Shown in pieces: positions 3,538 to 47,625 of a stretch of 64,000 nt of DNA. The notes under the pieces were generated by a model. The model worked only from the letters and a program-made list of their open reading frames with translations. It did not search any database and had not been told where the DNA came from. The stretch lies in sequence record LC727697.1, one strand, 5' to 3'. Both the position numbers and the translations under genes were made by a program. The first letter of the stretch is position 1, and every line of letters starts with the position of its first letter.

Positions 3538-4047
3538 TTATTTTAGAAATTCTTTTATATCTAAATTATATTTTAGTGAATCTACTTTATGCACGCCTAT
3601 TAAAAATAATACATAAGACGCAACACTAGACCCGCGACCCACACCCCAGATAAGGCAATTTTCCCTCATATATGATACAAAATATATCATAAATCTTAGC
3701 ATATTGTATAAACCGCGTTCTTGAAAGAGTTTCAGTTCCATTAATACTCTTTCTTTTTGTGCATCAGTGTCACATAAATTTAATATAAAAGAATCTATAT
3801 CTATATTTTTAAATTCCGGTGGCATAAACCATTCTGAAGACATTTTTTCATGAAATTCATCAACAGAACAAGTTAAGTGTTTCGTCGTATTAAGTTTATG
3901 CAACCCTAACACTTGTTCTACGTGCATATTATACTTGTTTATGTCTTCGTTGTCAACAAAGAGTGGATCTCCCAGCTGGTTCCCTTGCAAAAGGATATTT
4001 ATGCCTGTTGTTATAGTTATTTCTTTTCTATTATATTTGTCGTTCAT
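3538..4047 (-). CDS. dnaE: DNA polymerase III alpha-like protein, N-terminal half (GRGS region)
   Basis: RVxxELxxF, WGVGRGSSVASYVLFLIGVHKVDSLKYNL matches the DnaE GRGS segment; ends immediately before the DxD motif. Confidence 0.85.
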   Translation of the reverse strand: MNDKYNRKEITITTGINILLQGNQLGDPLFVDNEDINKYNMHVEQVLGLHKLNTTKHLTCSVDEFHEKMSSEWFMPPEFKNIDIDSFILNLCDTDAQKERVLMELKLFQERGLYNMLRFMIYFVSYMRENCLIWGVGRGSSVASYVLFLIGVHKVDSLKYNLDIKEFLK

Positions 4048-4738
4048 TTAAAACATCAACTATGTCTACAACATTGTCTTCAGTTTCTACATTTATACCT
4101 AATTCTTCTTTTATTGCAGCTTCGAACTTATCGTTAATATCATTTAACACATGTCTTGTACAAACAGACATTTGTACTTCTTCTAATGTACGATTTTCTA
4201 AATCAGGAACATAATCAAATGTATCTACATCAACCCTATCCCACCACGGCACGTCCCATATAGGTTTTTCATCTTCATTAGGAAACATATCGTCTATTGT
4301 AGGAAGATCATATATTTCATCTACATGTTTTCCGAATGTGTAACTAAAATTACTATCGTCTGATATAATAATGTCACCTATAGATAGCTTACCATCTGTT
4401 ATAGATGAAATCTTAGAATGAAAAACCATTGCTAGTGTTTTTAAATCTTTAGGAAAACTAGGAACACCTATTATGTTATTTTCTGCTATATCATACAACA
4501 TAGAAATTCTAGTATCGCTCATATCGACGATAATACTGCCTTCTACGTAATTAGAAATCCAGTAATCTATTATATTTTTTTGAACTTCAAAATCAATTAA
4601 ATCTTCACCGTTGCTTGCATCCTTTGCAGGAACGAATCCAATTATAATTTCCCATTCAGTTTCTTTCAATACAGAAGTAAGAACGTGTGTTTTAAATTTT
4701 CTTTTAAAAGAATAAAACCCTTGTACGTCAGCAAACAT
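4031..4738 (-). CDS. Hypothetical protein
   Basis: 235-aa ORF overlapping its neighbours' start/stop. Confidence 0.75.
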   Translation of the reverse strand: MFADVQGFYSFKRKFKTHVLTSVLKETEWEIIIGFVPAKDASNGEDLIDFEVQKNIIDYWISNYVEGSIIVDMSDTRISMLYDIAENNIIGVPSFPKDLKTLAMVFHSKISSITDGKLSIGDIIISDDSNFSYTFGKHVDEIYDLPTIDDMFPNEDEKPIWDVPWWDRVDVDTFDYVPDLENRTLEEVQMSVCTRHVLNDINDKFEAAIKEELGINVETEDNVVDIVDVLNERQI

Positions 4739-5035
4739 TTATTTGTTCCTTTTTGTTATACGGTCTAATGCAGTTGGGTCACCCGATACTTTACCTAAAT
4801 TAATAGGAGCGAGGGGATCTATACCTTTTGCCATATTTTCTTTTGTTAATTGCTCATTACGTGCCTTGGTCATCCTGTATTCGTATTCTTCTTCTAGTTG
4901 TGCCAGTGTTATTTCTACACTGTGTATTAAGGTATGATGGCCAGCCATATGTGCTTGATTTAAATATTCCCTTGCTTTCATCAATCTAGACTGTAATTCT
5001 TCATCTGTTAATTTAGACCAATCGCCGTTAATCAT
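4739..5035 (-). CDS. Hypothetical helical protein
   Basis: 98-aa ORF with AGGA RBS, first gene after a sigma70 promoter. Confidence 0.75.
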   Translation of the reverse strand: MINGDWSKLTDEELQSRLMKAREYLNQAHMAGHHTLIHSVEITLAQLEEEYEYRMTKARNEQLTKENMAKGIDPLAPINLGKVSGDPTALDRITKRNK

Positions 5036-5055
5036 ATAGAAATTCCTTTTCCTAT

Positions 5056-5085
5056 ATTATATGGCAAAAAAAGGGCACCTGTCAA
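5056..5085 (-). promoter_or_regulatory. sigma70-type promoter overlapping a terminator
   Basis: TTGACA(5085-5080)-N18-TATAAT(5061-5056). Confidence 0.8.
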
Positions 5086-5095
5086 GTGCCCTTTT
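5069..5095 (-). terminator. Intrinsic terminator
   Basis: AAAAGGGCAC/GTGCCCTTTT stem, 7-nt loop, T-run on minus strand. Confidence 0.8.
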
Positions 5096-5110
5096 ACAAC
5101 TATGCAGGTC

Positions 5111-5611
5111 TTAGCTGCGTCCGGAAAAGTGCTTGAGCCAGTCGTCCAACTCATCTTCACTAGCATCGGCAACTGTTTGCCGTTTTGAATCCGAACTACT
5201 AGTACCTACTAGGACTTGTTCTCCGGACTTATATGCTTCCGTCTCTGCTAGCTGTCGCTCTAGGTTCTCTCGGAGCACAGCAGCAGAAACAGCTCGGTAA
5301 GTAGACGGTTTGCCAGTTAGTTCTAACTCAACTAGGCCGAAGGTCATAATCCCTATCAAGCCACGGAGAAAAAATGCAGCGTTGAGCCACATAGTATTTC
5401 GCCAATGAATTAGATGATGCTTAGTAAAACGAATACTGCAAATTTTTTCCTTTAATTCGGCGAAAAAATATTTCAGTCGCAATACTCGCATTTTACGAGC
5501 AATAGCTTTTTTCTCTTTTTCCCCGATTACCTTGCGGTGCGCTAGTGGATCTGCATTTGCATCGGTAGCTTGGGTATTTACAGAAGTATTTTTTTGGTTC
5601 ACAGTTGCCAT
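5111..5611 (-). CDS. Hypothetical protein (GC-richer than flanks)
   Basis: 166-aa ORF with GGAG RBS, followed by terminator. Confidence 0.75.
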   Translation of the reverse strand: MATVNQKNTSVNTQATDANADPLAHRKVIGEKEKKAIARKMRVLRLKYFFAELKEKICSIRFTKHHLIHWRNTMWLNAAFFLRGLIGIMTFGLVELELTGKPSTYRAVSAAVLRENLERQLAETEAYKSGEQVLVGTSSSDSKRQTVADASEDELDDWLKHFSGRS

Positions 5612-5633
5612 TGCATGTCTCCAGCGGCGGTTA

Positions 5634-5936
5634 TTAAAGTATATGCGTAGTATAAAGCGTATAATGTACGTCGTCTAGTGGCAATTTATATGTACTAATA
5701 TAGGTAATATTTGTAAGTTCTATAATTCTGTTTAGTATGTCTGAGTATGTCGGTTTCGCATCGATCCCGATGGCTTCATAATCTTTAAACCAAGCCATTT
5801 TAGTAAATATTATAGAATCTTCTGTAGAATATAATTCTTGTATTGTTCGTTTTATTTTTGCCACAAGGAAAAATACATTTCCGTCTTCGCCGCCTATATC
5901 TACAGAATACTTTGATAGGTCCCAGTGTTTAGTCAT
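5634..5936 (-). CDS. Hypothetical protein
   Basis: 100-aa ORF in operon. Confidence 0.7.
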   Translation of the reverse strand: MTKHWDLSKYSVDIGGEDGNVFFLVAKIKRTIQELYSTEDSIIFTKMAWFKDYEAIGIDAKPTYSDILNRIIELTNITYISTYKLPLDDVHYTLYTTHIL

Positions 5937-6264
5937 TTGTCGTTATATGAAAAAGTAAACCAGTGCGCCATACATATACTCTAGTAAATTCAGATCCAAC
6001 ACTTAGTGTAAAATACACAGCATCGTCATGATTCTTAAAAGCAATATATTTGAAGTCATTGGCGTCTACAGCTACTCCAACAAATTCAGAAGTCCGCCGC
6101 ATATCTTTTATTATATTATCTATTTTTCTTCTATATGAATCTATTTCATCATTAGAGTAATCCTTACAAGCAGGCGACCATCTACTATAATAAACAGGTT
6201 TAGTGCTCATGTACATCAAGGGATTATCTTCGGATACTAAATAATCGGAATATAATTTTTTCAT
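5929..6264 (-). CDS. Small hypothetical protein, FxxxxDAxxFxL paralog family
   Basis: IAFKNHDDAVYFTL motif shared with neighbours. Confidence 0.7.
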   Translation of the reverse strand: MKKLYSDYLVSEDNPLMYMSTKPVYYSRWSPACKDYSNDEIDSYRRKIDNIIKDMRRTSEFVGVAVDANDFKYIAFKNHDDAVYFTLSVGSEFTRVYVWRTGLLFHITTND

Positions 6265-6518
6265 GTTCTTTCTGATATTCCATTAATAAATATATATGGA
6301 TATTTTATCCTAGCTATTATTTCAGATTCGGGTGAATTAAAATAAAATACTTCGTATCGTTCACCGTCTTTAAACGTGTCGTGCCACCCTATATCACTTC
6401 TAAATTCAGTAAATAGCCATTTTCTAATTTTTCTTGTATTATTATAATCAGATTTAATTGTAATTTTTAGCATCTTTCTTTTCAAAAAGTTGCCTAAGGT
6501 TTCAGTGACAAAATCCAC
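6261..6518 (-). CDS. Small hypothetical protein, possible member of the same paralog family
   Basis: IRKWLFTEF...VFYFNSPESEIIARIKY. Confidence 0.65.
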   Translation of the reverse strand: MDFVTETLGNFLKRKMLKITIKSDYNNTRKIRKWLFTEFRSDIGWHDTFKDGERYEVFYFNSPESEIIARIKYPYIFINGISERT

Positions 6519-6754
6519 GAATCTAGAAATTTTTTATAAATAATTTCATCACTAGCAGTAGCAAATGATGCATCTATATTTGATTGATCCCTTAAATTTA
6601 CTATATGAGTACGCCCATATTTTGTTAGAATTTCTATTCTAATTTTTCCAGATATAAAAGAAACTACATACTCTTCTGTGGATTTCTGGTACTTAACTTC
6701 AGCAATTGTGTTTAGTGGTATTATTGTTGAGTCTTCCGTGACTAATACTTTCAT
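6494..6754 (-). CDS. Hypothetical protein
   Basis: Start moved to ATG 6754 (MKVLV), AAGG upstream. Confidence 0.6.
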   Translation of the reverse strand: MKVLVTEDSTIIPLNTIAEVKYQKSTEEYVVSFISGKIRIEILTKYGRTHIVNLRDQSNIDASFATASDEIIYKKFLDSWILSLKP

Positions 6755-6768
6755 TCCCTTACCTTTTA

Positions 6769-7038
6769 TTATAAACAAAGTTTTATTAGAACAAGAATAT
6801 GTTCAGCATCCATGTCGGTATTGTACACACGAACCGGAAACGGCTTTTTAGTTCTAACAAACCGGGCAGAACGCTGCGAGAGAATCCGTTTAATAGAATA
6901 CCGCGGCGATCCTGCCGACCAATTTTTTCTGCCATGACCAAACTGACTGTTCATAAAAGAAACAAATTTATTAAACTGCTCAACGTCGTCGAAGTCGATT
7001 TCGAACTTAACATCCTTGGCGTTGCTGTTCGTAGACAT
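6769..7038 (-). CDS. Hypothetical protein
   Basis: 89-aa ORF. Confidence 0.65.
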   Translation of the reverse strand: MSTNSNAKDVKFEIDFDDVEQFNKFVSFMNSQFGHGRKNWSAGSPRYSIKRILSQRSARFVRTKKPFPVRVYNTDMDAEHILVLIKLCL

Positions 7039-7085
7039 TGCGTTGATACCCGGTAGTTATGTTGATTTGTACTTATAATATATTA

Positions 7086-7523
7086 TTACTGCGCATGTTG
7101 CAACATATATTTTGTCCAAGCCAAGATAATTGCGTGTTTCACTATAGCATAATTTTGAAAATAGAATTCCTCACCTAAACATTCTCTATAATTATCAGGT
7201 GACACATCAACCCCATACCATGCAGTTCCACCCTGTGTTTTGCAATTTATATAAAGCTGTGCTTGGTTATCTGAGATTATATCCACAATTCCTACGTCGC
7301 AATCGACCGTAACCTTTTCAGAAAGTTCTAATATATTGCATAACGGTACAATCCTTCCGCATACTGTTTTGACAAAACATATGTGTTCTGCTACATCAAA
7401 ATGAGTCATTAACGGATTATTATATAATTTAAATAGATCACTAGATACGTCTCTTTGACCACTTATATCTTTATAAATATTGTTATATATCGGATTCTTT
7501 CCGAACTTCGGATTCATAGACAT
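7086..7523 (-). CDS. Hypothetical protein
   Basis: 145-aa ORF with GGAGG RBS. Confidence 0.7.
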   Translation of the reverse strand: MSMNPKFGKNPIYNNIYKDISGQRDVSSDLFKLYNNPLMTHFDVAEHICFVKTVCGRIVPLCNILELSEKVTVDCDVGIVDIISDNQAQLYINCKTQGGTAWYGVDVSPDNYRECLGEEFYFQNYAIVKHAIILAWTKYMLQHAQ

Positions 7524-7890
7524 TAAATTTTCCTCCCGGATACCGTGCCTCTAGTTTTTCCACGTTCATGCCGATTATTTCATCTAGGGAAATATCGAGT
7601 GCAATACAAGCCGAAACAACATAGAACATTACGTCGCCTAATTCTCGTTTTAGATGATATACCACATCATCTGTATATTCTTTTCCTTGATATTTAAGTT
7701 TCTTAACAATTTCCCCAAATTCACCCGATTCTGCTAGCATACCCTGGCTTGCAGTATCTAATGTTTCTATCTTACAGCCATTTGCTTTGAGCTTTTTTAG
7801 TGCATCAATATATGCATCGAAATTAGAACTCGGTTCACTAAGTAGTTTCTGTACAAATTTAGTATAATTATTGTTTGTGCTCATTGTCAT
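7483..7890 (-). CDS. mazG: MazG-like NTP pyrophosphohydrolase
   Basis: GMLAESGEFGEIVKK...RELGDVMFY...NVEKLEARYP. Confidence 0.9.
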   Translation of the reverse strand: MTMSTNNNYTKFVQKLLSEPSSNFDAYIDALKKLKANGCKIETLDTASQGMLAESGEFGEIVKKLKYQGKEYTDDVVYHLKRELGDVMFYVVSACIALDISLDEIIGMNVEKLEARYPGGKFNVYESEVRKESDI

Positions 7891-8344
7891 CCCCTGACGT
7901 TAATACTGTTACGTTTGCTTGATTAAATAGCCATTTAGATACTTTTAATTCTTCTGTCCATCGGTCATTATATCCAGTGTCTTGTATTAATATAGATTCG
8001 TCTATTATAACATGTGTTATACCGGACTGAATAATAGCCCTTGCACAAGATGCACACGGATGATGAGTTGTATATAAAACACATCCTTTTAATGATACAG
8101 TGGCTTGATATATTGCATTTCGCTCTGCGTGCTCGCACGCTAATAACTTAAACTCTCTATTATTATAAAGAGATTCGTCGTCATCTACTCCCTTCGGAAA
8201 TCCATTAAACCCAAAACTAACAGGTTCTCCGATTTTAGTTACAATTAATGCACCCGTTTTAGTAGATGGATCTTTAGACCAAGACGCTATTAATTTAGTT
8301 AATTCTATTAACCTGGTTTTCCATTTTTTATCTAATATGTTCAT
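7868..8344 (-). CDS. dCMP deaminase
   Basis: SKDPST, HAERNA and PCASC zinc motifs. Confidence 0.92.
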   Translation of the reverse strand: MNILDKKWKTRLIELTKLIASWSKDPSTKTGALIVTKIGEPVSFGFNGFPKGVDDDESLYNNREFKLLACEHAERNAIYQATVSLKGCVLYTTHHPCASCARAIIQSGITHVIIDESILIQDTGYNDRWTEELKVSKWLFNQANVTVLTSGDDNEHKQ

Positions 8345-9378
8345 TATTTAAATTTAATATTCAAATATCCGTGTTCTGTTGTACTTGGCAATGGATTTCT
8401 AGAATTCCATTCTACAGATAATTTATGCGTGCCATCCGGTTTAAATATATAATAATTATAATTGCGTCTACCAAGTGTAAAATGTCCCATTACGTGGTAC
8501 ATTAATTTTATAGAATATGCATGTTCGTCTATATCACTAGATACATTTACATTTTCTATTTCTACTTTTTTGTTAAATGCACCAAAGATATTAAAAGGCA
8601 CAATACAATCGTATTTGTCTAGTTTAGTGTATTGATCTGATGCAATTTTATTAAAATTATCCCTATTTACATCTTTGTCACTAAACTCATCTAATACATT
8701 ACCTACAGTTGCAATCTTATTTGTAGATTCTATAAAATATGTTAATGTATTACTAATATTATCTATTTTTGCAAAGAGCAATTTTTTCTTTGCAGTAGAT
8801 AGTAATTCATATGAATGACTCTTAGTTTGATAATAATATTGTCCGCAAAGTTCTATAAAATTAAATGATCCTAGATATACGCACTCTACTTTAGATTTTA
8901 ATTTCACCCAAGATCCTATAGGAACTTCGGATAATTTAATTTTCGACTCTAATAGTTTAGTATTTTCTCTGGCAGATTTATATAGACTAGACGATTCTGG
9001 TATTAACACGTTTTCGCCAGAATCATATCCCCACACACATTTGTCTTGGATTAATCCTTCTGAGATGCTGCCACAACTTAGAATAGAAGTAATGTTGTTT
9101 GAACTTATCTCTATTGTAAATCCTCTAGGATCACATACAGTCCACAGACTAGTATTTCCTCGCCAAGTTGATGATTTAATTATAGTAAATCCCGGCAAGG
9201 GCTGGTTTGCGTATACAGTAGTGCTATTTTTATAATATCTATTTATAGACTCCATTTTCTGGTGTCTTGTTTTTTCGTAAGGACACATTCCACCTGCAGG
9301 AATTTGGTTAGTTTTTTGTGTTCCTGATGTATTGGGAATTCTAGTTCCTACAAAAATTTCTTCCGGTATTCTAATCAT
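8344..9378 (-). CDS. Hypothetical phage protein (DPRGFxxEI motif)
   Basis: 344-aa ORF with start/stop overlaps. Confidence 0.75.
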   Translation of the reverse strand: MIRIPEEIFVGTRIPNTSGTQKTNQIPAGGMCPYEKTRHQKMESINRYYKNSTTVYANQPLPGFTIIKSSTWRGNTSLWTVCDPRGFTIEISSNNITSILSCGSISEGLIQDKCVWGYDSGENVLIPESSSLYKSARENTKLLESKIKLSEVPIGSWVKLKSKVECVYLGSFNFIELCGQYYYQTKSHSYELLSTAKKKLLFAKIDNISNTLTYFIESTNKIATVGNVLDEFSDKDVNRDNFNKIASDQYTKLDKYDCIVPFNIFGAFNKKVEIENVNVSSDIDEHAYSIKLMYHVMGHFTLGRRNYNYYIFKPDGTHKLSVEWNSRNPLPSTTEHGYLNIKFK

Positions 9379-9632
9379 TTATGTATTAATCCAAATGTTA
9401 CTGCTTCTTCTTTATTTCTAAAAGTAAATATATATCTAGTAATTTTACCTGAATTATGTTCTACATCTAATTCCCATTTATATCTACAATTTTCATTACA
9501 CCAGAGTATAAGTTTGTGTAATGTTTCTGCAGTGTGGGGATTAGGATCTATGCGTATTGTTGATGAATTCTCGTGAGATTTGCCTAATACGCTCATTAGT
9601 TGTTGAACAAAGTATTTCAACATCTTTATCAT
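9375..9632 (-). CDS. Small protein, WCxEN...FxF...eAxxFxL paralog family
   Basis: LWCNENC...FTFRNKEEAVTFGL. Confidence 0.75.
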   Translation of the reverse strand: MIKMLKYFVQQLMSVLGKSHENSSTIRIDPNPHTAETLHKLILWCNENCRYKWELDVEHNSGKITRYIFTFRNKEEAVTFGLIHK

Positions 9633-9741
9633 AACAATACCTATTATCTTCTAATAGCTTACTGTAAGTTTCTTGGAAAATATACAAATCTTCTAAACTA
9701 GAAGAATTTATAATTTGCAATTTATCGTCTAGGCTCATCAT
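9541..9741 (-). CDS. Small hypothetical protein
   Basis: Strong AGGAG RBS before ATG; overlaps the 5' end of the next gene. Confidence 0.6.
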   Translation of the reverse strand: MMSLDDKLQIINSSSLEDLYIFQETYSKLLEDNRYCYDKDVEILCSTTNERIRQISREFINNTHRS

Positions 9742-9756
9742 TGTTATTAGCTCCTA

Positions 9757-10014
9757 TTAAAGTCCAAACTGTAATTTGAACATTAGCGCTTCCGAGCCAT
9801 CTTCGAACCCAAATTTAGATCCGCCGAGCATGGTCCATTTAGATTCTACGTTTTCATCACACCAAATTACCAAAGATTTATTTACAATATCAGATAAATC
9901 TAGTTCTAGATCTACAAAAGTCCATTCTGTATTTTTATTTTTAAAAATAGTAGTAGCCTGTACATAGTTTCCTGTAGTGGTGTATTGTTTCTTAGGAAGA
10001 TTACTAAAATCCAT
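9757..10014 (-). CDS. Small protein, WCxEN paralog family
   Basis: IWCDENV...FGFEDGSEALMFKLQF; AAGGAG RBS. Confidence 0.8.
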   Translation of the reverse strand: MDFSNLPKKQYTTTGNYVQATTIFKNKNTEWTFVDLELDLSDIVNKSLVIWCDENVESKWTMLGGSKFGFEDGSEALMFKLQFGL

Positions 10015-10042
10015 TTGACTTACTCCTTTTTATTATGCTAGA

Positions 10043-10070
10043 ATTATAACATAATTTTATACAAAAGCAA
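10043..10070 (-). promoter_or_regulatory. sigma70-type promoter (extended -10)
   Basis: TTGCTT-N16-TATAAT with TG immediately upstream of -10. Confidence 0.6.
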
Positions 10071-10101
10071 GTTGTTTTCGTTTAATATATAGGAAAATAC
10101 A

Positions 10102-10332
10102 ATGTCTGAAGAGCAAAAAACATACAGTGAATCTTATATGCATGCAAAAACATATATTACAAACTGGAATTCTTGGGGAAACAACCAATTACAGTTTAAA
10201 AATATAAAAGATGCTATAGATGTAGTAGCAGAGCTCGGAATAAACAAATGTGTTAGGCTAGGAACCCGTGTAAGATTTAAAGAATATGATGAGTTGGTAT
10301 TTCAACGCATTAAATATTACATAGACGAGTAG
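10102..10332 (+). CDS. Small hypothetical protein
   Basis: 76-aa ORF, AGGA RBS, followed by hairpin. Confidence 0.7.
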   Translation: MSEEQKTYSESYMHAKTYITNWNSWGNNQLQFKNIKDAIDVVAELGINKCVRLGTRVRFKEYDELVFQRIKYYIDE

Positions 10333-10389
10333 CATTTTTAACACAATTTAGCGTATGATGTTTATGTGTTTGCGCTGTAACACAATTAC

Positions 10390-10418
10390 TAAAAACCCCG
10401 CATTATGCGGGGTTTTTA
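10390..10418. terminator. Terminator hairpin (14-bp arms, 1-nt loop)
   Basis: TAAAAACCCCGCAT-T-ATGCGGGGTTTTTA. Confidence 0.8.
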
Positions 10419-10490
10419 ATGCATTTAAAACACTACACACAACATTTATATAGTGTTATTTAATTTACCTTAAACAAATAATGCTCACAC

Positions 10491-10515
10491 AAAAAAAGGG
10501 GACCGAAGTCCCCTT
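10491..10515 (-). terminator. UUCG-tetraloop intrinsic terminator after clpP
   Basis: AAGGGGAC-TTCG-GTCCCCTT-TTTTT on minus strand. Confidence 0.9.
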
Positions 10516-10541
10516 AAATTATCACCAGCTACAGTGAATAG

Positions 10542-11213
10542 TTACTTCAGGTCAGCTTTAGTGCGGAATACTTTGTCTGCCAACCCGAACTCAACTGCTT
10601 CTTGAGCAGAGAGGAATGTGTCGAATTTCATAATTTCGATAAATTCGTCGAACGTCTTGCCAGCAGTGTTATGATGAACATACAGCTCAGTGAGACGCTT
10701 GTTAATTTTAGATAGTTCTGCCGCATGGCGGACAGCATCTTCAATTCCTAACTCAACTTGTTGAGTTGTGCCGCCGAATCCCCCGAAGCCGCCGCTGGCT
10801 CGATGAATCATAGTGCGGGATTCGCTAGACACGTAACGATGCCCCGGAGTACCTGCTTGTGCTAGGAAAGACCCCATACTGCATGCTTGGCCCAACACGA
10901 TGGTATTAACGGGACACGAAATATATTCCATCGTGTTATAAATAGACAAACCAGCAGTAACGCTGCCGCCCGGAGAGTTAATATACATCGAAACGGGCTG
11001 TTCTGCCGATTCCGATTCGAGGAAAAGAAGCTGGGCAACAATTACGGATGCCATCTCGTCGCGAACTGGACCATTAAGAAAAACAATACGCTCTTTTAGA
11101 AGACGGGAATAAATATCCCAACTACGTTCGCCGTTGCCGTTATTTTCGACAACCATGGGGATCAAACCAGCTTCGGTAGGATATTGTCCTTGTGCTGTAT
11201 AATTGTAGCTCAT
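10542..11213 (-). CDS. clpP: ClpP protease proteolytic subunit
   Basis: [22 protein letters not shown], catalytic Ser (ACSMGS), His (MIHRA), Asp (FDTF). Confidence 0.97.
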
Positions 11214-11309
11214 ATAATAAGTCCTGTGTTTGTTTACGTTGTGTATATAATAGCAATGTTATTATACATCGTCTAGTTATAATTAAAGTTTAGTATGATA
11301 AATATTGTT

Positions 11310-11681
11310 ATGAAAATAAAAGAAATAATACTAGAAAATAAAACACATATAGAATTGTACGGTGCTGCAAACACTGACATTGATGCATTTTACAATCCAG
11401 AATTATATACTAATAATCAAAAACAGATTAAGAGATATGCAGTTTTGGGTATGACAGGTGACGGACCGACTCCTGTATTTAAAACTATTCCGAAAAATCC
11501 TGCCAACAAACCATTTAATAATCATCCAAAAAACGACGATACACAATCTCCTGGTTTTAGAGGTTTACAAATGGCAAAAGAACGTGCAGGATTACCGTTT
11601 GAGCCTTACCAAAAAATAGATCCTAGTTATAAACAATACAACGATATTCCATATGGTCCCGGAAATATTATGGATAGATAA
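11310..11681 (+). CDS. Late-expressed hypothetical protein (probable virion protein)
   Basis: Start moved to ATG 11310 (MKIKEIILE), 5 nt after ATAAATA at 11298-11304. Confidence 0.7.
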   Translation: MKIKEIILENKTHIELYGAANTDIDAFYNPELYTNNQKQIKRYAVLGMTGDGPTPVFKTIPKNPANKPFNNHPKNDDTQSPGFRGLQMAKERAGLPFEPYQKIDPSYKQYNDIPYGPGNIMDR

Positions 11682-11707
11682 AAATGCCCCGTACGGGGCA
11701 TTTTTAT
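11678..11707. terminator. Bidirectional terminator (30-bp perfect palindrome)
   Basis: ATAAAAATGCCCCGT|ACGGGGCATTTTTAT between convergent genes. Confidence 0.85.
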
Positions 11708-12477
11708 ATCTTGTCGCTCAAATATTGTTCTAATGTATACGCTAAGTCTCTATTATATTCGGGTTTTGTTTCGTCTAATGCATCTAAATTATTTAATGCC
11801 CAAATCCAATAGTCCATTGGAACTTCATCTAAGGGTTTATCTTTATGTTTGCCAAATGGCATAGACGAAAGCATTAACGGCTTATTAGATATTTCTATAA
11901 GTTGATCTGCATACGGTATATCACTATCTAATTTATTCTTAGACTCTAAATCAGTTACTATTCGTTCCAATAATACACCGCACATATATGCATCTTCTCC
12001 TGCTCTATGCGCTACGAAATCGTCAGGAATATCTAACATTAATTTATATCTTAGATAAGATAATTTAAATTCTTCAAAAGTAGGATCGGTTTGATATGCA
12101 TATCGTGCAAGTTTTAAAGTACACAACCAATTAGTGCTAGATGCTATGTTATATCTCTCTAATACCTTTTTATCATACGGAGCATTGTGTGCAACTATTA
12201 GTTGGCAGCTTGTAATAGATTTGTATTGGTCGACTACATCGGCAAAAGTAGGTTTTCCTTCTACCATACGATCTGTTATGCCAGTTATAGAACTTATTTT
12301 AGGAGTTATTTGCGCATGATTAACTCTGGGTTTAAATAATTCACTACTATAAGTCCATTTGTTAGTATAAGACGCTATACCTAATTCTATTATTTCTGCT
12401 ACACGAGTATCTAAATGTGTAGTTTCTGTATCTAAAATTATAAGTGATTCTAGTAATTCCTTTAAACGTGGTGTCAT
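11704..12477 (-). CDS. DEDDh 3'-5' exonuclease (ExoX/DnaQ-like) with C-terminal MPFGKH domain
   Basis: DTETT, AHNAPYD, HRAGEDA; C-terminal MPFGKHKDKPLDEVPMDYWIW. Confidence 0.9.
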   Translation of the reverse strand: MTPRLKELLESLIILDTETTHLDTRVAEIIELGIASYTNKWTYSSELFKPRVNHAQITPKISSITGITDRMVEGKPTFADVVDQYKSITSCQLIVAHNAPYDKKVLERYNIASSTNWLCTLKLARYAYQTDPTFEEFKLSYLRYKLMLDIPDDFVAHRAGEDAYMCGVLLERIVTDLESKNKLDSDIPYADQLIEISNKPLMLSSMPFGKHKDKPLDEVPMDYWIWALNNLDALDETKPEYNRDLAYTLEQYLSDKI

Positions 12478-12543
12478 TATAATATTCTCTTGTTATTGTA
12501 TACATTATAACACCAAATATATAAAATATATACACAATTATGA

Positions 12544-12576
12544 TAAAATAAAAGGGCTCAATGCCCTTTTATTTTA
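12544..12576 (-). terminator. Intrinsic terminator
   Basis: TAAAATAAAAGGGC / GCCCTTTTATTTTA arms, 5-nt loop. Confidence 0.8.
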
Positions 12577-13083: not shown

Positions 13084-13102
13084 AATAATATATCCTTTTT
13101 TA

Positions 13103-13264: not shown

Positions 13265-13273
13265 AAAATATCC

Positions 13274-37722: not shown

Positions 37723-37729
37723 AAAAATC

Positions 37730-38443: not shown

Positions 38444-38688
38444 TATTTTAATACGTCCGATATTGATAGATTTATTTTGCTCAAATCTGCATTATAACCT
38501 TGCGCAATGCGATCGCCTGTTTTCCAACGTTTTATTACAGATCGCTTCGCTGCGCCTGCGCCGAGGTCGCCTAATTTAATTCTCTTATTAATTATTTTAA
38601 TGACCTTTTGATATAAACTCTTATCGAAAGCTATATCCTTAGTAATATCGGATACAGGAGTTTTACTTTGTATTTCATCTAATCGCAT
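38443..38688 (-). CDS. Small basic hypothetical protein
   Basis: 81-aa ORF, TAATG coupling to the NTase gene. Confidence 0.65.
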   Translation of the reverse strand: MRLDEIQSKTPVSDITKDIAFDKSLYQKVIKIINKRIKLGDLGAGAAKRSVIKRWKTGDRIAQGYNADLSKINLSISDVLK

Positions 38689-41039: not shown

Positions 41040-41063
41040 ACTATTACCTTATTATTCGAAGTT

Positions 41064-41093
41064 ATAATAGCAAAAATCCCGTTATTGCGTCAA
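41064..41093 (-). promoter_or_regulatory. sigma70-type promoter with its -35 in a terminator loop
   Basis: TTGACG-N18-TATTAT. Confidence 0.7.
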
Positions 41094-41110
41094 GCAGTAA
41101 CGGGATTTTT
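41072..41110 (-). terminator. Intrinsic terminator
   Basis: AAAAATCCCGTTA / TAACGGGATTTTT arms. Confidence 0.85.
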
Positions 41111-41123
41111 ATAGAAAATAATA

Positions 41124-42323
41124 TTACCGATGTTTTCTATTTAACCGTTTAGATTCATTATCTGGATCGAGTTCATTGGTATCTCGGTGTTCAGTCTCAG
41201 AAGTTAATTGAGTAATAATATCTAAAACATCTTTGTCAGATAAAGTAGACTTTTCCATTATAGGAGATTCGATACTTTCAGGAAGAAGTTTATACAATCT
41301 AGATTGGTTTCTTTTTAGCCATGATAGTACGGGCGCTCGCAACCCTGCTTTCTTAATAAGAGATGCTACCCTAACCAATTCTTCGTTATAATCTTCTTCT
41401 TTTGTAATTCCTGCTTCTTTGAATATATTTTTGATTTCTCTATCACTAAATTTAAAATCTTTGAGAATTTGCTCTATATCTGCACTATCAGTAGAACCGT
41501 GATATTTATTCTTCCATACTCGTTTTAGTATATCTGCATCAACTTCGCCGCGACCGCCATTTAGACCTAATTGTCCCTTTAATACATCTAGCTTATTAGA
41601 TGCATTTTGTCCTACATTTGAATTGCCGATAGTGTCTGTGACTCTAGACCAAGCCCTCGATAAAAAATCCAATGGTCCTTCGTTTATAATAGATTCATTT
41701 GTAGAGGAAGTATCATCTAATTCTTTATTGACTTTATCTAATGCAAATGATAACATCGCAAATATTTCGTTTGCTACTGTTCCTTTTTTAGCAGATTCTG
41801 CGGCGGCAGATAAAGTAGATGATATAAATGCAGCGGCGGCAGAATTAGATAGCTGTCTCATTAAATAATCTACCATTTTATTAACATCTGCTGCTCGTCT
41901 TTGGCCAGATAATGCAGTCTTTATATCTACTTTATCTTTTATTGCCTGTTTATTAAGTTTACGCTGAGCTTCTTCGGCAGTTTCTTTATCATCTGACTGA
42001 ACTTCATGTGATATTTCAGTTTGTTCTGCCTGATCATATATTTGGTCTATTACGGGCTCTATTCGCTGTTTAACTTGATTGGCAGCATTTGATGCACTTC
42101 TGTTATCAGAGGTAAAGGATCCTAAAAATCCTTTACCAGATCCTCTTTTCTTAGAAGCAATGTTGAATATATTTACTATTTCTCCCGGAGAAATAAATGC
42201 CTCTATGATTGTAGTAAACTCCGAAATATCGTTACGCACAGATTCATAGAGACGGTTTAGATCTTTTAATTCCTGTTTAGATTTTTCTGTAGATAAAAAT
42301 CTTTTAAAAGTTTTATTAGTCAT
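41124..42323 (-). CDS. Probable head-internal helical protein
   Basis: 399 aa; INE|G, LPE|S, TNE|S sites; in late operon. Confidence 0.6.
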   Translation of the reverse strand: MTNKTFKRFLSTEKSKQELKDLNRLYESVRNDISEFTTIIEAFISPGEIVNIFNIASKKRGSGKGFLGSFTSDNRSASNAANQVKQRIEPVIDQIYDQAEQTEISHEVQSDDKETAEEAQRKLNKQAIKDKVDIKTALSGQRRAADVNKMVDYLMRQLSNSAAAAFISSTLSAAAESAKKGTVANEIFAMLSFALDKVNKELDDTSSTNESIINEGPLDFLSRAWSRVTDTIGNSNVGQNASNKLDVLKGQLGLNGGRGEVDADILKRVWKNKYHGSTDSADIEQILKDFKFSDREIKNIFKEAGITKEEDYNEELVRVASLIKKAGLRAPVLSWLKRNQSRLYKLLPESIESPIMEKSTLSDKDVLDIITQLTSETEHRDTNELDPDNESKRLNRKHR

Positions 42324-42927
42324 CGTTTTCTAATTCTCGTATTAGCGTAAGAAGTTGTCTTTTATTTAACACACCTGATGTTACAAATCTTTGAATACGC
42401 TCCATGTCTTCCTGTTGTTCTGGAGTCAATTCAAATGTATTAGCTTTAGTGTAGGAGTTAAGTTCGCCTGCTATGTCAGGTCTTGGCTCGGGAGCGCGGG
42501 TGGTCGCTGGTCGTTGTGTTTGTTTAGGTTGTTCAGGTTTTGTTTCTAGTTTTTGTGTATCTGGAATAATTTCAGGTATTTTTGTTTGGACTTTTAATTT
42601 ACCTTGAATTATATCTTGCACCTGCTCTTCCGGATATCCTAAACCTATAAGAAACTGCTTTACATATTCTGGATCAGTTTCTTTTTTTTCTGGACCTACT
42701 TTTGCATTATCTTCACTTGCTTTTTTAACAAATTGTTTAACGACTTCTTTAGTAGTACGTTTAGTAGGCGCTTTTTTATTAGGTTGTTTAGAAGCTATCT
42801 TCTTTTTAGAAGAAGATTCTGCATCAGATACATCCGGTGCTTCATGCATATAGCTGCTCTGTTGTGCTACCGGACTGTTTAACCCAATGAAATCGTCAAA
42901 TGTACTAGCTTCGAATACTTTTTTCAT
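42316..42927 (-). CDS. Probable head-internal protein
   Basis: MKKVFE|A start; Lys- and Pro-rich linkers. Confidence 0.6.
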   Translation of the reverse strand: MKKVFEASTFDDFIGLNSPVAQQSSYMHEAPDVSDAESSSKKKIASKQPNKKAPTKRTTKEVVKQFVKKASEDNAKVGPEKKETDPEYVKQFLIGLGYPEEQVQDIIQGKLKVQTKIPEIIPDTQKLETKPEQPKQTQRPATTRAPEPRPDIAGELNSYTKANTFELTPEQQEDMERIQRFVTSGVLNKRQLLTLIRELENDD

Positions 42928-42929
42928 TA

Positions 42930-43169
42930 TTATTCCTTAAGTTTTCTCACTGACTTACTAAATCGTTTAGCATCCTTGTATTTGATACTACTAAGTAATT
43001 TTTTTTCTAATTGCTCTGCGTCTGCATCAGAGTAATTAGATTCGATATACTCAATTAGATGAATTGCAGATTGTATTATATGTTCTGCTCTATATTCTAT
43101 CAATTCTTCTTTGCTCTTAGAAGGAACATAATTATTAAGTTCTTCTAAAATACTACGTCTAGTACTCAC
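42930..43169 (-). CDS. Small hypothetical protein
   Basis: GTG start with AGGGG RBS; late motif at 43191-43197. Confidence 0.7.
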   Translation of the reverse strand: MSTRRSILEELNNYVPSKSKEELIEYRAEHIIQSAIHLIEYIESNYSDADAEQLEKKLLSSIKYKDAKRFSKSVRKLKE

Positions 43170-43209
43170 ATCAGTATCCCCTATTCGTTATATTTATCTA
43201 CTATTACTA

Positions 43210-44649
43210 TTATCTGTTGCCGCTAAGTAGATTACGAAGCCGGGCACTTTTTTCTACCATAGATTCTGCCGGTTTTTGTTCAATAACAGGTGTCTTTTGT
43301 ACATGAGTATCTTTATTATTAGGTGTGTCTAATGACCTATCTGCGCGGAGTTTATCAATAACACTCCTTGTATTCTCGGATAATGCGCTAGCTTGTTCTG
43401 GATCTAAATCAGATAATCTTAGTGTTCTTTGATCAAACGCAAGATCTACTTTCTGCCCGACGCCCGACGACGAACGTGTTTTAAGAAATTGAATTTGATA
43501 TCTTCCATTTTCTCTCATAGCTTGCGTTGTAAAAATAGCTATTACATTATCGGCAGTATTAATCTTAGAAATACCCCCAGAAATGTGTTCATGTCCAAAA
43601 TCTACAGATTCGTGTGAATTTCTGTTTAACTGCGATGCAGTGACTAATAGAATTTGAAGCTCAACTGCTAAGTTCCTTAATTCTTCAGAAACGTATTTGT
43701 CTTTAACAAACAGATCCGATGGACTTACCTTTTTACTTATAGGCATACACAAATCCAAATAGTCTAACATTATTGCATCTACTTTTAATCCTGTTTGAAT
43801 TTCGTATTCTTTTATATAAGAACGTATATCGTTGGCTGTACAACCATTGGGTAATTGCTTAATTCGAAGGGAGCCCTTAGTTTTCTTTTTAGATTCAATA
43901 ACTTTTATAGCTACGTCATCTACCCTGCGTAAAACTTCTTTTGTATCAATACCTGTGTTCATAGAATCTATGCGCATAGAACATAAGTTTTCGCTCAATT
44001 CTAAACTAAGGTAAACTACGTTAAGTCCTGCTATAGCCCAATTTAACCCTATATTTTGTAGGAATATAGATTTGCCAGCGCCCGATTGTCCTGCAAAAAT
44101 ATTTAGAGCGCCGCGCTCAAAACCACCGTACAGTTTTGCATCTAAATCTTTCATGCCAGTTGACACTAACGATTTTCTGTCTTTAATGGCATTAAGTCTA
44201 GACAGTGGATCTCCAAAATAATCAGTACCTAAATCTTTAACTAATGCAATAGAAACTGCATTCTTAACTTTTTGTTCAACTTCTCCGTACCGACCGGTAA
44301 CTAATAAATCAGGAGACTCTAATATCACATTCTCTAGTTGTTTATGCCTAGCAAATGTTTCGTATTCTTCTAAAAACCAATTTTTGTGGCTATCATGTAT
44401 GTTATCTAATAACTCAAATGATTTTCCTGTTATGGCAGATACTTGTTCTACAGTAGGAAGAGTACTATGTTTATCTGCATGTTCATTTAGAAAATCTATA
44501 ACTTTTTGGTTAATCTTATCCGAATAGTGGTCTCGTTGTATTATAGATCGGCATCTAATAAACAATTCTGGGTCAGTTAAGAAAAATTTTATAAACAAAT
44601 CTTCTACGCCAGTATTATAATCCTTTACTACGTCTTTGTTTTGTTTCAC
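43210..44649 (-). CDS. gp41: Replicative helicase gp41/DnaB-like
   Basis: GQSGAGKS, LSLELSE, LDYLDL, ASQLNR, KTRSS. Confidence 0.95.
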   Translation of the reverse strand: MKQNKDVVKDYNTGVEDLFIKFFLTDPELFIRCRSIIQRDHYSDKINQKVIDFLNEHADKHSTLPTVEQVSAITGKSFELLDNIHDSHKNWFLEEYETFARHKQLENVILESPDLLVTGRYGEVEQKVKNAVSIALVKDLGTDYFGDPLSRLNAIKDRKSLVSTGMKDLDAKLYGGFERGALNIFAGQSGAGKSIFLQNIGLNWAIAGLNVVYLSLELSENLCSMRIDSMNTGIDTKEVLRRVDDVAIKVIESKKKTKGSLRIKQLPNGCTANDIRSYIKEYEIQTGLKVDAIMLDYLDLCMPISKKVSPSDLFVKDKYVSEELRNLAVELQILLVTASQLNRNSHESVDFGHEHISGGISKINTADNVIAIFTTQAMRENGRYQIQFLKTRSSSGVGQKVDLAFDQRTLRLSDLDPEQASALSENTRSVIDKLRADRSLDTPNNKDTHVQKTPVIEQKPAESMVEKSARLRNLLSGNR

Positions 44650-44650
44650 A

Positions 44651-45673
44651 CTATATTCCTTTTATTTTTCTTTTAATTCGTATGGCAGTAGAATTCCGTT
44701 CGATACCGTATATAATACTCTGAACTGTAAGTAATCTTCCATATTTTTGGGATGCTTCACTAGCATCTTTTATATTATTATCCCAATTAGGAAATGATAC
44801 ATACCAGTTATATTCTAAAGCAGAATCTACTAAATGACTGCCGTTACTATCAAAATCAGGCAATACTATTATTTCTTTGCCTAGCGAGTTTATTATATTT
44901 GCTTGATGTTTACTTACAGAACCCATGGTAGATACTCCATCTACCATTATAGCATCTATTACTCCTTCCGTTAGTATAACATATTTTCTATTGTAGGATC
45001 TTTGGGAATCTAACCCATACACAAAATGTTCGGGGAATCTATTTTCATATCTTCTTATTTCTAATTCATTTGGTTGTTCTTCAAAATATCTTCCGCAATA
45101 TCCTACAACTTTTCCATTATATGTGAACGGAAGTATTATTCGTTTATTCCATAAAAATTTCTGAGAGGGTGACCAGTATATATTAGACATATCCGGAAAT
45201 CCTCTAGATAAGGCATACATTGCACATTTAAGAAGATTGGGATCATTAGGAGATATTTCTAACCATTCTAATATAGGTTTAGAATTTTTAGGAAGACTAG
45301 TAGTAGTCCAATTAGTTTTAATACTTAATTCTAGTTCGGGAGTTTTAAATATGTCTCCTGCTTCTTTCTCTCTAAATGCCTGGAATTTAAGTTTACGAAT
45401 ATCATCATCGGATGTACCTATATGTCGTAGAAGGAACTCTATTTTCTCTCCTATCAGAGCCCCCGGAGTCCATTTTGTTACAAATGTACAGTTAAAGCAA
45501 TGGACCCCTATTGTTCCATCCGATTCAAACATAACACCGAACCGTTTTCGCTTATCAGCAGTTGTACCCATAGCGACACACAAAGGACAATTACAAACTA
45601 ACCATCCTTTGTTTCCTGGCTTTAAATACGGAAGTCTAGAAGTTATTTCTTGTTTTAAAAGTTCGCTAATCAC
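44651..45673 (-). CDS. gp61: DNA primase gp61-like
   Basis: CPLC/HCFNC zinc ribbon, TEGVID and PDFD TOPRIM motifs; start moved to GTG 45673 by promoter geometry. Confidence 0.9.
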   Translation of the reverse strand: MISELLKQEITSRLPYLKPGNKGWLVCNCPLCVAMGTTADKRKRFGVMFESDGTIGVHCFNCTFVTKWTPGALIGEKIEFLLRHIGTSDDDIRKLKFQAFREKEAGDIFKTPELELSIKTNWTTTSLPKNSKPILEWLEISPNDPNLLKCAMYALSRGFPDMSNIYWSPSQKFLWNKRIILPFTYNGKVVGYCGRYFEEQPNELEIRRYENRFPEHFVYGLDSQRSYNRKYVILTEGVIDAIMVDGVSTMGSVSKHQANIINSLGKEIIVLPDFDSNGSHLVDSALEYNWYVSFPNWDNNIKDASEASQKYGRLLTVQSIIYGIERNSTAIRIKRKIKGI

Positions 45674-45679
45674 GCGCAC

Positions 45680-45708
45680 ATTATAGCATGCACGTTTTTC
45701 GTTGTCAA
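45680..45708 (-). promoter_or_regulatory. sigma70-type promoter giving a leaderless primase mRNA
   Basis: TTGACA-N17-TATAAT, then 6 nt to GTG. Confidence 0.8.
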
Positions 45709-46578
45709 TTAACTTCTTAACATTACTTTAGAAATTTCTCCATTGTTTGGGATTGTCGAATCCGGATACCAACGGAATTTTAACCAAAGAACATTTGCTT
45801 GAAAAGTGTATGGCATTATTCCAGTGAAATTATTAAACTGAATATAATCAAACATAGATCTTAAATTAATCGGAAACCAAGAACTAAATTCATCTTCTAG
45901 CGAAGGAATTTGGTCTAATGTACCATATACTTCAAATTTACCTGTGAAATTTTCTGCATATATTGCAATAGTATGCACACCCGATCTATAATTTTTTACT
46001 CTATTAGATGGAAATGGACCTGCATTGTAATAATTAAAAGTATAATCAGTGTTTATTACTTTTCGCCATTCAGTAGCAACTATAGTGTCTATGGGCGCCT
46101 TTTCTAAACTATCTCTAACTTCTGCATACAGTTGTATATCAGATGATGTATTTGTATAAAACGGCGTACTAATTACAGGGAGTCCGTCTATATTAGATAT
46201 GCCGGGAATAAATTCTTCTTGTCCTATTATACTCAAAGTGTAATATCCATTAGGCACATTTATTAGATCTCCTTCTAATATAGACAATATAAAAATTCCA
46301 GGAGACTGCTCATATATATCACACTGTTTTACTAGCACTCGTTCTTTATTTTCTGTATTAATTAAACTAGCAAACACAGAAAGTCCATGAATATTTACTA
46401 ATCGTCTATCAGGATTATAAACCCTAAATTTTACTTGATTATCTACACCTTTGTATAGTTTTATTGTTTGTGAATGCATAGGTCTATTATCCAATAATTT
46501 ACAATTGCAAGAAAGTATACCGTTATCATATAACAGTTCTACAAAATTATCATATTTATATAATGTATGGAATGTCAT
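45709..46578 (-). CDS. Probable virion structural protein (beta-rich, BppU-N-like)
   Basis: IKLYKGVDNQVKFRVYNPDRR; TATAAATA 5 nt before ATG. Confidence 0.6.
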   Translation of the reverse strand: MTFHTLYKYDNFVELLYDNGILSCNCKLLDNRPMHSQTIKLYKGVDNQVKFRVYNPDRRLVNIHGLSVFASLINTENKERVLVKQCDIYEQSPGIFILSILEGDLINVPNGYYTLSIIGQEEFIPGISNIDGLPVISTPFYTNTSSDIQLYAEVRDSLEKAPIDTIVATEWRKVINTDYTFNYYNAGPFPSNRVKNYRSGVHTIAIYAENFTGKFEVYGTLDQIPSLEDEFSSWFPINLRSMFDYIQFNNFTGIMPYTFQANVLWLKFRWYPDSTIPNNGEISKVMLRS

Positions 46579-46583
46579 ACACG

Positions 46584-46621
46584 TATTTATATTAAAACGG
46601 TTAGTGTTAAAGGAATAAATA
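46584..46621. promoter_or_regulatory. Divergent pair of T4-like late promoters
   Basis: TATAAATA on minus (46591-46584) and ATAAATA on plus (46615-46621). Confidence 0.6.
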
Positions 46622-46640
46622 ATACAGAGAGAAGAAAATC

Positions 46641-47039
46641 ATGGACAACACAAATAATAATACAATAGATCAAGAGTTAGCAGAATTATCTGAAAAATTT
46701 CCATTTTTGAGTGGCATACAACACTTAGAAAATTTCTATATAGGAATTATTCAAAATTCGGATGACAAATATATAAGTTTTTATGATTTTAAATCATTAA
46801 AAAACAGTCAACACAAAGATATATTTCTTCAATGCGGTGACTGTTGGTGGTGGGAATCTTCTAGGATATTACCAATAAATATATTCATGCCAAACGAAAT
46901 GGCAGAATTTAGATATTGCCTAAAAACCCTAGTAAACAAAGATATAAAAATAGTTTTCGGACCATGTACTTCTCTTAACAATATGCTCAAAAAGAGAATA
47001 AAAAGACGACAAGTATCTTTAATCAGGAAAATAACTTAA
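46641..47039 (+). CDS. Hypothetical protein
   Basis: 132-aa ORF on plus strand with late motif upstream. Confidence 0.75.
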   Translation: MDNTNNNTIDQELAELSEKFPFLSGIQHLENFYIGIIQNSDDKYISFYDFKSLKNSQHKDIFLQCGDCWWWESSRILPINIFMPNEMAEFRYCLKTLVNKDIKIVFGPCTSLNNMLKKRIKRRQVSLIRKIT

Positions 47040-47625
47040 ATGGATCGGGTTCTTGTTCTGCTTCTTCTTCTAATAAATTCAACTGAACAACAATTGCAAG
47101 TGCATAACTAATGGCATGTGCTTTTTTAAAATGATATGATCCGTCGCTGGGCTTATCCCACACAGTTTTGGCAATAATATCCCAAGGTTTATATTGTAAA
47201 TGATACTTACTCGGACGTATAACAGCCAGCAACATTGCTAACTGTTCTACACTTTTCGGTTTCATTCCTACTGCTAGATCAGCATAATTTCCTAAATGAA
47301 ATAAATTTTGAACTATCTGTTTATGTTCAAAATAAGACCAGTTAGGTTCTTTATCTATTAATTTCTTTAGATGTTCCTCTGATCTAACTTGTTCGTATAT
47401 ACTTACGTTAAGAAGATCAATCTTCATGTAGCCTAATTCTTCTGCAACTTTATAATCTATGTTGCTCATATTTTGTTCCGGATCAAACGGAATAGGTTGA
47501 AAATATACACCAGATAAATGTTTCTTTCCTACTCCGTCTAATTTAGCAGATATGTGTTGTAGTCCAGACAAAACTGTTAACCTATCTGCTACGTCAATAT
47601 CAACATCAGTAACTACTTTTGCCAT
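47023..47625 (-). CDS. dnaE: DNA polymerase III alpha-like protein, C-terminal half (catalytic Asp residues)
   Basis: TDVDID, KHLSGVY, MKIDLL, FKKAHAISYA match DnaE palm/finger motifs. Confidence 0.88.
   Translation of the reverse strand: MAKVVTDVDIDVADRLTVLSGLQHISAKLDGVGKKHLSGVYFQPIPFDPEQNMSNIDYKVAEELGYMKIDLLNVSIYEQVRSEEHLKKLIDKEPNWSYFEHKQIVQNLFHLGNYADLAVGMKPKSVEQLAMLLAVIRPSKYHLQYKPWDIIAKTVWDKPSDGSYHFKKAHAISYALAIVVQLNLLEEEAEQEPDPFKLFS

Follow-up and report, generated by a model that had tools for sequence, protein, structure and literature searches.

The sequence window analysed here, which is the whole 64,000-nucleotide stretch of record LC727697.1 read 5' to 3' on one strand, is that of a PA5oct-like Pseudomonas jumbo phage, and it carries two open reading frames (ORFs) that are best explained as the PA5oct-lineage copies of the split minimal DNA polymerase III (Pol III) alpha of group 2.2 (RaK2/121Q/Atu_ph07/PA5oct-type) jumbo phages. 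The two ORFs, which we call the N-half and the C-half, had been singled out in an earlier note made from the sequence, and they were indeed found where it had placed them, 43 kb apart on the same (minus) strand, with products of 169 and 200 amino acids. To this we add that, read along the coding strand, the gene for the C-terminal half comes before that for the N-terminal half. The window has a GC content of about 33%, holds nearly all of its genes on the minus strand, and carries genes for a primase, DnaB and a clamp loader. Both ORFs are intact in 11 PA5oct-like Pseudomonas jumbo phages, with protein identities of 98.8-100%, and the near-identical relatives include phage sp. 30-2, PA5oct, MIJ3, Callisto and Paride (genus Wroclawvirus). 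The features of the two genes are as follows.

3538..4047, minus strand: N-half of the split minimal Pol III alpha, 169 amino acids (ORF, PF07733, phrog_11127, predicted structure)
3628..3639, minus strand: GRGS loop, N-half residues 137-140 (translation; aligned to the GRGS of Taq and E. coli alpha)
3538..3552, minus strand: C-terminal end of the N-half, EFLK plus stop, equivalent to DnaE FERFL(N); conserved break point (alignment, translation)
47023..47625, minus strand: C-half of the split minimal Pol III alpha, 200 amino acids (ORF, phrog_11778, profile against the PDB, predicted structure)
47593..47607, minus strand: DVDID, C-half residues 7-11, equivalent to DnaE PDFDVDF, with metal-binding D7 and D9 and conserved D11 (translation; alignment)
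47410..47424, minus strand: KIDLL, C-half residues 68-72, equivalent to DnaE K-F/M-D-F-L-G, with the third catalytic D70 and conserved K68 (translation; alignment)
47206..47217, minus strand: RPSK, C-half residues 137-140, equivalent to the DnaE finger motif RPGP (profile alignment)
47116..47130, minus strand: FKKAH, C-half residues 166-170, equivalent to the DnaE finger motif F-N-K-S-H (profile alignment)

The core of this system, which the earlier note presented as a discovery, has been known since 2021. On the basis of genome comparisons, Iyer, Anantharaman, Krishnan, Burroughs and Aravind (2021, Viruses 13:63; PMC7824862) described a "minimal, split DNA polymerase III alpha" in group 2.2 jumbo phages, with PA5oct among the genomes analysed. 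In their description the system consists of two standalone proteins from distant genes, the N-terminal one binding the NTP and the C-terminal one binding Mg2+ and the template, with the other Pol III domains absent from both, in jumbo phages that have a T4-like replisome and a family B polymerase alongside; synthesis of one strand or repair was proposed as the role. We did not find the family B polymerase in the approximately 80 kb of Paride annotation examined, and its presence is taken from the literature. Both genes are annotated as polymerase in the Paride, PAC2 and Phosso records and in the RefSeq entries of RaK2, K64-1 and Atu_ph07. A literature search found no biochemical or genetic follow-up of the split mini Pol III alpha.

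Sequence and predicted structure of the two halves

Against Pfam the N-half matched PF07733 (DNA_pol3_alpha, Bacterial DNA polymerase III alpha NTPase domain) with 36.9 bits (E 4e-9; curated cut-off 23.9 bits), its residues 95-168 corresponding to profile positions 21-94 of 260. It belongs to phrog_11127, labelled 'DNA polymerase' (E 8e-46), and a phmmer search of the PDB returned Pol III alpha only (Taq 382-454, E. coli 322-392), with the end of the protein, ...EFLK, falling opposite ...FERFL. In the AlphaFold2 model, which had a predicted local distance difference test score (pLDDT) of 85, residues 73-169 superposed on E. coli alpha 278-393 with a root mean square deviation of 2.5 Å and a Z of 8.7 (VIA-align) and correspond to the first part of the DnaE palm; according to the predicted structure, residues 1-72 form a family-specific head that has no counterpart in DnaE. 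The PHP domain PF02811 gave no Pfam match in the N-half or in the adjacent ORF 4031-4738. The family comprises more than 5500 clusters at 90% identity, all of approximately 170-180 amino acids. For each half we aligned 28 diverse members, with 42-67% identity to the window proteins. GRGS is the G-S motif of the Pol-beta-type nucleotidyltransferases, which in DnaE binds the phosphates of the incoming nucleotide, and G137, R138, G139 and S140 were invariant among the aligned N-halves. All 28 of these end at EFLK or EFLR, three of them carrying two extra residues.

A search with the single C-half sequence gave no match in Pfam or the PDB. The profile of the 28 homologues matched Pol III alpha only in the PDB, weakly (E 0.04-0.26), in four colinear pieces that take in the DxDxD strand, the stretch from K-x-D-F-L to RPGP, and Y-x-F-N-K-S-H-A. 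In the alignments DVDID stands with DIDID and DFDVD of Mycobacterium tuberculosis and E. coli alpha, and KIDLL with KMDFLG of M. tuberculosis DnaE1. The C-half also matched PHROG 405, the family of full-length DnaE, with E 7e-7, and belongs to phrog_11778, again labelled 'DNA polymerase' (E 2e-63). Its AlphaFold2 model (pLDDT 90) aligned over residues 1-200 with E. coli alpha 396-808 and M. tuberculosis DnaE1 415-835 (Z 8.5); the best 13 structural entries were all DnaE or PolC, the next entry being unrelated with a Z of 2.1, and a comparison with AFDB clusters gave the same picture of a C-family polymerase. The protein holds the remaining palm with the three carboxylates, and its thumb and finger regions are greatly reduced in length: 200 amino acids stand in for approximately 410 in E. 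coli, so that about half of the 396-808 stretch of alpha is deleted, and only two finger motifs, RPxK and FKKxH, remain. This family counts more than 1000 clusters, all of approximately 190-200 amino acids, with 552 representatives at 50% clustering. Every aligned C-half starts 4-6 residues ahead of the DxDxD strand, and D7, D9, D11, K68, D70, L72, N73, R137, P138, K140, F166, K167 and H170 are invariant in the 28 homologues.

Two further observations concern the C-half. The PA5oct-like proteins have an extra acidic tail with an aromatic end (..EEEAEQEPDPFKLFS; window 47026-47070, minus strand), and similar acidic-aromatic ends occur in a few other lineages, being absent from most family members; the tail seems to resemble the C-terminal interaction peptides, of clamp or SSB type, that other replication proteins have. 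In Atu_ph07 (NC_042013) the protein match to the C-half, L012:2501-3079, includes the DxDxD strand. The RefSeq coding sequence starts at 2585, which appears to be too far downstream and to lose two catalytic Asp residues, since the match begins at 2501.

Based on the predicted structures and alignments, the two proteins line up end to end along E. coli alpha 278-808, the break falling between residues 393 and 396. The isolated halves gave modest Foldseek E-values (4e-3 for the C-half and 3e-2 for the N-half), probably because each is an incomplete domain, and the VIA-align and AFDB comparisons were clearer for both. A Pfam scan of the two halves detected no PHP, finger (PF17657), HhH/HHH_6, OB or intein/Hint domain, the sole match being PF07733 on the N-half. 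A Pol-beta-type centre needs both the G-S loop and the carboxylates. In the alignments the G-S loop lies on one chain and the three carboxylates on the other, and neither chain is therefore a complete centre of this type. The observations in the earlier note were thus fully confirmed: the end of the N-half at the FERFL equivalent and the start of the C-half just before DxDxD agree with the PDB alignment and with both families, GRGS, DVDID and KIDLL are present within the roughly 370 residues that it gave (369 by translation) and are invariant across the families, and the accessory domains (PHP, OB) and the intein that it reported as absent had no Pfam match in either half.

The earlier note had also considered that the halves might be non-conserved or decaying, in which case the ORFs would be functionless fragments of a captured dnaE. 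Their small size fits with this, as does the original PA5oct record, in which both genes are a 'hypothetical protein'. However, both families are large and uniform in size, with thousands of homologues of the same length at 40-68% identity and with invariant catalytic residues, and the ORFs are intact in the 11 PA5oct-like genomes and transcribed. The halves are under strong purifying selection, and the reading as pseudogenes was rejected as refuted by this conservation; we leave it hardly any probability.

Fused homologues, co-occurrence and transcription

A profile search of 1.84 billion representatives identified one protein of 375 amino acids with the C-half at residues 190-372, and two further fused clusters, with 78-81% identity, are 376 amino acids long. 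In these fused proteins (P0311, P0391 and P0392; 375-376 amino acids) the halves follow each other in N-to-C order over a 10-residue linker (DNKEGIYNIA in the protein of 375 amino acids), with no stop or start at the junction. The N-half part has 44% identity to the N-half of the window (E 3e-25) and the C-half part 40% identity to its C-half (E 5e-37), and the PF07733 match runs through the junction, covering profile positions 12-121. An alignment of the fused form, the halves and DnaE fragments resolves this junction column by column. Compared to the pair in the window, the fused form has the same two modules and motifs, but in a single ORF. The fused gene was present on four metagenome contigs from four samples (loci L004-L007) and is therefore no assembly accident. 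It stands where the split genomes have their C-half, and the opposite-strand gene and the structural-protein gene follow downstream as they do there. A natural fusion in the order of DnaE supports the halves working together.

Fused forms are rare, with three clusters at 90% identity compared to thousands of split ones, and a search of IMG/VR for more found none. In a tree of C-halves the fused sequences form a clade of their own (support 100), which is nested, together with four split C-halves, in a larger clade (support 99). With the midpoint root of this tree, placed without an outgroup, far from the fused clade, the simpler reading is that the fusion would be secondary rather than ancestral. 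By language-model features P0311 resembles many Atlas clusters of 355-380-residue proteins with PF07733 and PF17657 from Bacillota, and the structural neighbours of these clusters include forms of 450-500 residues with an N-terminal HTH_3 domain. Jumbo phages may not be the only carriers of minimal C-family cores on a single chain, and some of the Bacillota clusters could be fragments.

In cyanobacteria (Synechocystis and Nostoc dnaE-n and dnaE-c) the DnaE catalytic subunit is also made from two distant genes, the products of which are ligated by a split intein, the break lying elsewhere in a full-length DnaE. By analogy, the phage halves could be joined post-translationally in the same way. 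The phage pair shares with the cyanobacterial one a family C catalytic subunit from two distant genes, but differs from it in the absence of intein parts and in a break that separates the G-S loop from the DxD strand within the palm. Since the N-half stops after EFLK and the C-half begins 4-6 residues before DxDxD, there is no room for an N-intein of approximately 100 or a C-intein of approximately 35 amino acids. The Pfam scan showed no intein or Hint domain in either half, and the fused homologue manages with its short linker. Besides the analogy, the one point in favour of joining by an intein is that this phage lineage has an intein in another gene, the family B polymerase, which in the near-identical phage MIJ3 is reported to be split by one (PMC6892783). 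For lack of space and of an intein domain we rejected this explanation and give it practically no credence.

The earlier note had proposed to look at co-occurrence and the break point across jumbo phages; the halves were found to co-occur, and the break point does not vary between members. Both halves are present together in approximately 95 jumbo-phage records, 15-224 kb apart. Per genus, the numbers of records with the N-half and with the C-half were 34 and 34 for Escherichia, 11 and 11 for Pseudomonas, 10 and 11 for Klebsiella, 9 and 8 for Salmonella, 8 and 8 for Erwinia, 4 and 4 for Xanthomonas, and 4 and 4 for Yersinia. The surplus of weak N-half matches consists of the full-length DnaE of unrelated phages (Bacillus, Listeria, Clostridium and others). 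In the PA5oct-like phages, RaK2, K64-1, 121Q, PBECO4 and related phages the two genes are on one strand with the C-half 30-44 kb upstream of the N-half. XacN1 has the reverse order, with the N-half 15 kb upstream of the C-half, and 180-224 kb lie between the halves in Atu_ph07 and Phosso. This variation in order and distance indicates that the split is old and that the two genes have changed their positions with respect to one another; the common gene order is not explained by an insertion that simply interrupted one gene.

The halves are never adjacent in cultured phages, and each sits in its own conserved gene block, which together with the varying order and distance would suit two proteins with separate functions and no joint enzyme. 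We regard this as improbable, given that the phyletic patterns match, that natural fusions exist in the order of DnaE, and that the active-site elements are divided so that neither chain is complete alone. The gene just upstream of a close split C-half (L014:627-1229) was considered as an adjacent N-half and rejected, being the zinc-finger neighbour described below.

All 18 'bacterial or archaeal' matches to the C-half (L018-L035) were on contigs of metagenome-assembled genomes (MAGs) from unrelated phyla, including Neomarinimicrobiota, Elusimicrobia, Natrialbaceae, Rickettsiales and Pacearchaeota, one contig being 335 kb long, and none of the isolate cellular genomes carried the gene. These 18 look like jumbo-phage contigs mis-binned into cellular MAGs.

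Both genes were present in RNA-seq assemblies from PA5oct infection (one 2020 study), together in two of the runs, and the C-half was covered by contigs in all four runs examined. In two of the four the depth was 89-160 over 46.9-48.4 kb of the window and 0-3 just downstream, the drop lying approximately 100-160 nucleotides past the C-half stop codon, inside the opposite-strand ORF (window 46428-46900). The local contrast in depth points to RNA rather than carried-over DNA, and suggests a transcript end near the drop and low expression of the opposite-strand ORF in those two samples.

Conserved neighbouring genes

Both genes lie within a block for replication and nucleotide metabolism, the C-half near the primase and DnaB and the N-half near the clamp loader. 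The neighbouring genes of interest are the following.

2856-3525, minus strand: small gene phrog_14844 and a GroES-like co-chaperonin gene, following the N-half, with the clamp loader just below
46641-47039, plus strand: phrog_11637, 132 amino acids, on the opposite strand, overlapping the 3' end of the C-half by 17 nucleotides
47627-48334, minus strand: phrog_11058, 235 amino acids, N-terminal C2H2-type zinc finger, phage-only family, ending 1 nucleotide before the C-half start codon
11704-12477, minus strand: stand-alone DEDDh 3'-5' exonuclease (PF00929, E 3e-17)

The GroES-like gene, separated from the N-half by one small gene, follows it also in 121Q and in the very distant Phosso. Around the C-half the block consists of phrog_11758, the zinc-finger phrog_11058, the C-half, the opposite-strand phrog_11637, a virion structural protein and the primase, and it is kept in cultured phages and in 17 of the 18 environmental loci. 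Apart from one weak match, no N-half was found within 10 kb of this block in the loci examined.

The lone opposite-strand gene in the immediate surroundings of the C-half is phrog_11637. It stands tail-to-tail with the C-half also in RaK2, Phosso, Atu_ph07 and a Vibrio jumbo phage, in 17 of the 18 environmental loci and on the contigs with the fused gene. Conserved in it are FP-F, a WWWESNR-like motif and, at the C-terminus, a basic KRxKR tail. On the other side, the first conserved gene upstream of the C-half in every locus examined is phrog_11058, which abuts or overlaps it in several and is separated from it by inserts of 0.1-2 kb in others. This zinc-finger protein may be translationally coupled to the C-half or may be its partner; we found no link between it and the Pol III domains, and Atlas searches returned no function for either phrog_11637 or phrog_11058.

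The DEDDh exonuclease is closest in the PDB to ExoX, the PolC exonuclease domain and Pol III epsilon. Full-length homologues of it were present in 96 phage records, as many as contain the C-half, and in the RaK2 and 121Q types its gene lies upstream of the C-half at a distance of approximately 4.5 kb. We regard this exonuclease as a possible proofreader of the mini polymerase.

Elsewhere in the window, at approximately 52000-56900 on the minus strand (an approximate mapping of Paride 5971-10844), the Paride annotation has two coding sequences for a 'UvsX-like recombinase' of 95 and 423 amino acids, with a gene of 477 amino acids between them and a homing endonuclease following. This pair may be another interrupted gene.

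Proposed enzyme and its significance

We consider it likely that the two separately made chains form one Pol-beta-type nucleotidyltransferase with a composite active site, which would serve as an accessory DNA polymerase in a replication and repair module. In such an enzyme the N-half would contribute the beginning of the DnaE palm, with the GRGS loop that binds phosphates, and the C-half would supply the strands with the metal-binding D7, D9 and D70 together with the much-reduced fingers (RPxK, FKKxH). The separately made polypeptides would associate non-covalently, so that the palm sheet and a single composite active site are rebuilt across the chain interface, and the enzyme would add nucleotides to a 3'-OH, its most likely role being that of an accessory polymerase in phage replication or repair beside the family B polymerase. 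A two-chain enzyme is supported indirectly by the strict break point, the co-occurrence, the fused homologues and the location of the active-site elements on different chains; the heterodimer, its catalysis, its template dependence and its biological role are inferred.

Several points weigh against this interpretation. The thumb, most of the fingers, the PHP and clamp-binding domains, HhH and the OB fold are missing, and with the thumb, fingers and DNA- and clamp-binding domains gone, processive templated synthesis is not assured. In addition, the sequence link of the C-half to DnaE is weak by itself (E 0.04) and depends on colinearity, structure and the fused homologue, and the RNA evidence for the C-half comes from unstranded contigs. 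As the genes lie beside those for the clamp loader and the primase and helicase, a role at the fork is as open as one in repair or another role, and the non-replicative role suggested in the earlier note is one possibility among these.

The same losses would be compatible with a two-chain Pol-beta-type nucleotidyltransferase that does not copy a template, such as a terminal transferase, an enzyme adding primers or tails, or a maker of nucleotide signals. The thumb and most of the fingers are among the parts lost from alpha 396-808, about half of which is deleted, the clamp-binding, HhH and OB domains are absent, and the phage lineage already owns a family B polymerase. A minimal core of a G-S motif and three carboxylates is, moreover, common to many nucleotidyltransferases that are not polymerases. 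However, the finger motifs RPxK and FKKxH, which DnaE uses near the template and the incoming nucleotide, are invariant, the nearest structural relatives are exclusively C-family DNA polymerases, and the genes are set among replisome genes. We therefore think a non-templated enzyme unlikely, and prefer the accessory DNA polymerase.

A further-reaching possibility, which we put forward tentatively and with some doubt, is that these phages have a second replisome polymerase, of a Pol III-like kind, with the pair as its catalytic core. The DEDDh exonuclease (11704-12477) and the T4-type clamp system are candidates for its partners, and possibly also phrog_11058 and phrog_11637, which always flank the C-half.

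Family C polymerases are the bacterial replicases. With DnaE and PolC (PF07733; PDB 2HNH, 2HPI and 5LEW) the phage pair shares the Pol-beta-type palm, the GRGS loop, the DxD motif, the third Asp and the finger motifs RPGP and FNKSH, in a colinear order. Whereas DnaE and PolC are single chains of approximately 1100-1400 amino acids with PHP, thumb, full fingers, clamp-binding domain, HhH and OB fold, the phage pair has 369 amino acids distributed over two chains, and those extra parts are missing or cut down. To our knowledge, no minimal form of a family C polymerase has been solved, and a two-chain version of 369 residues would define the smallest set of elements needed for family C chemistry.

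The system analysed here is the same as that of Iyer et al. (2021), with nothing essential that differs. Our analysis adds to their description the residue mapping to E. coli alpha (278-393 and 396-808), the sizes of the metagenome families, the natural fused forms, the variable gene order and distance, the transcript evidence, the conserved flanking blocks and the candidate partner genes. The exact residue mapping, fused forms that can be expressed as a single chain, and the candidate partner genes also offer practical handles on the system. If the pair is indeed the core of a second replisome polymerase, it would be the smallest working family C DNA polymerase, a natural two-piece enzyme with fusable halves, and a usable model of the ancestral Pol III core. 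Both halves are under strong selection throughout a very large group of giant phages, although these are already equipped with a family B replicase, and this raises the question, as posed in 2021, of why a phage needs two unrelated polymerases.

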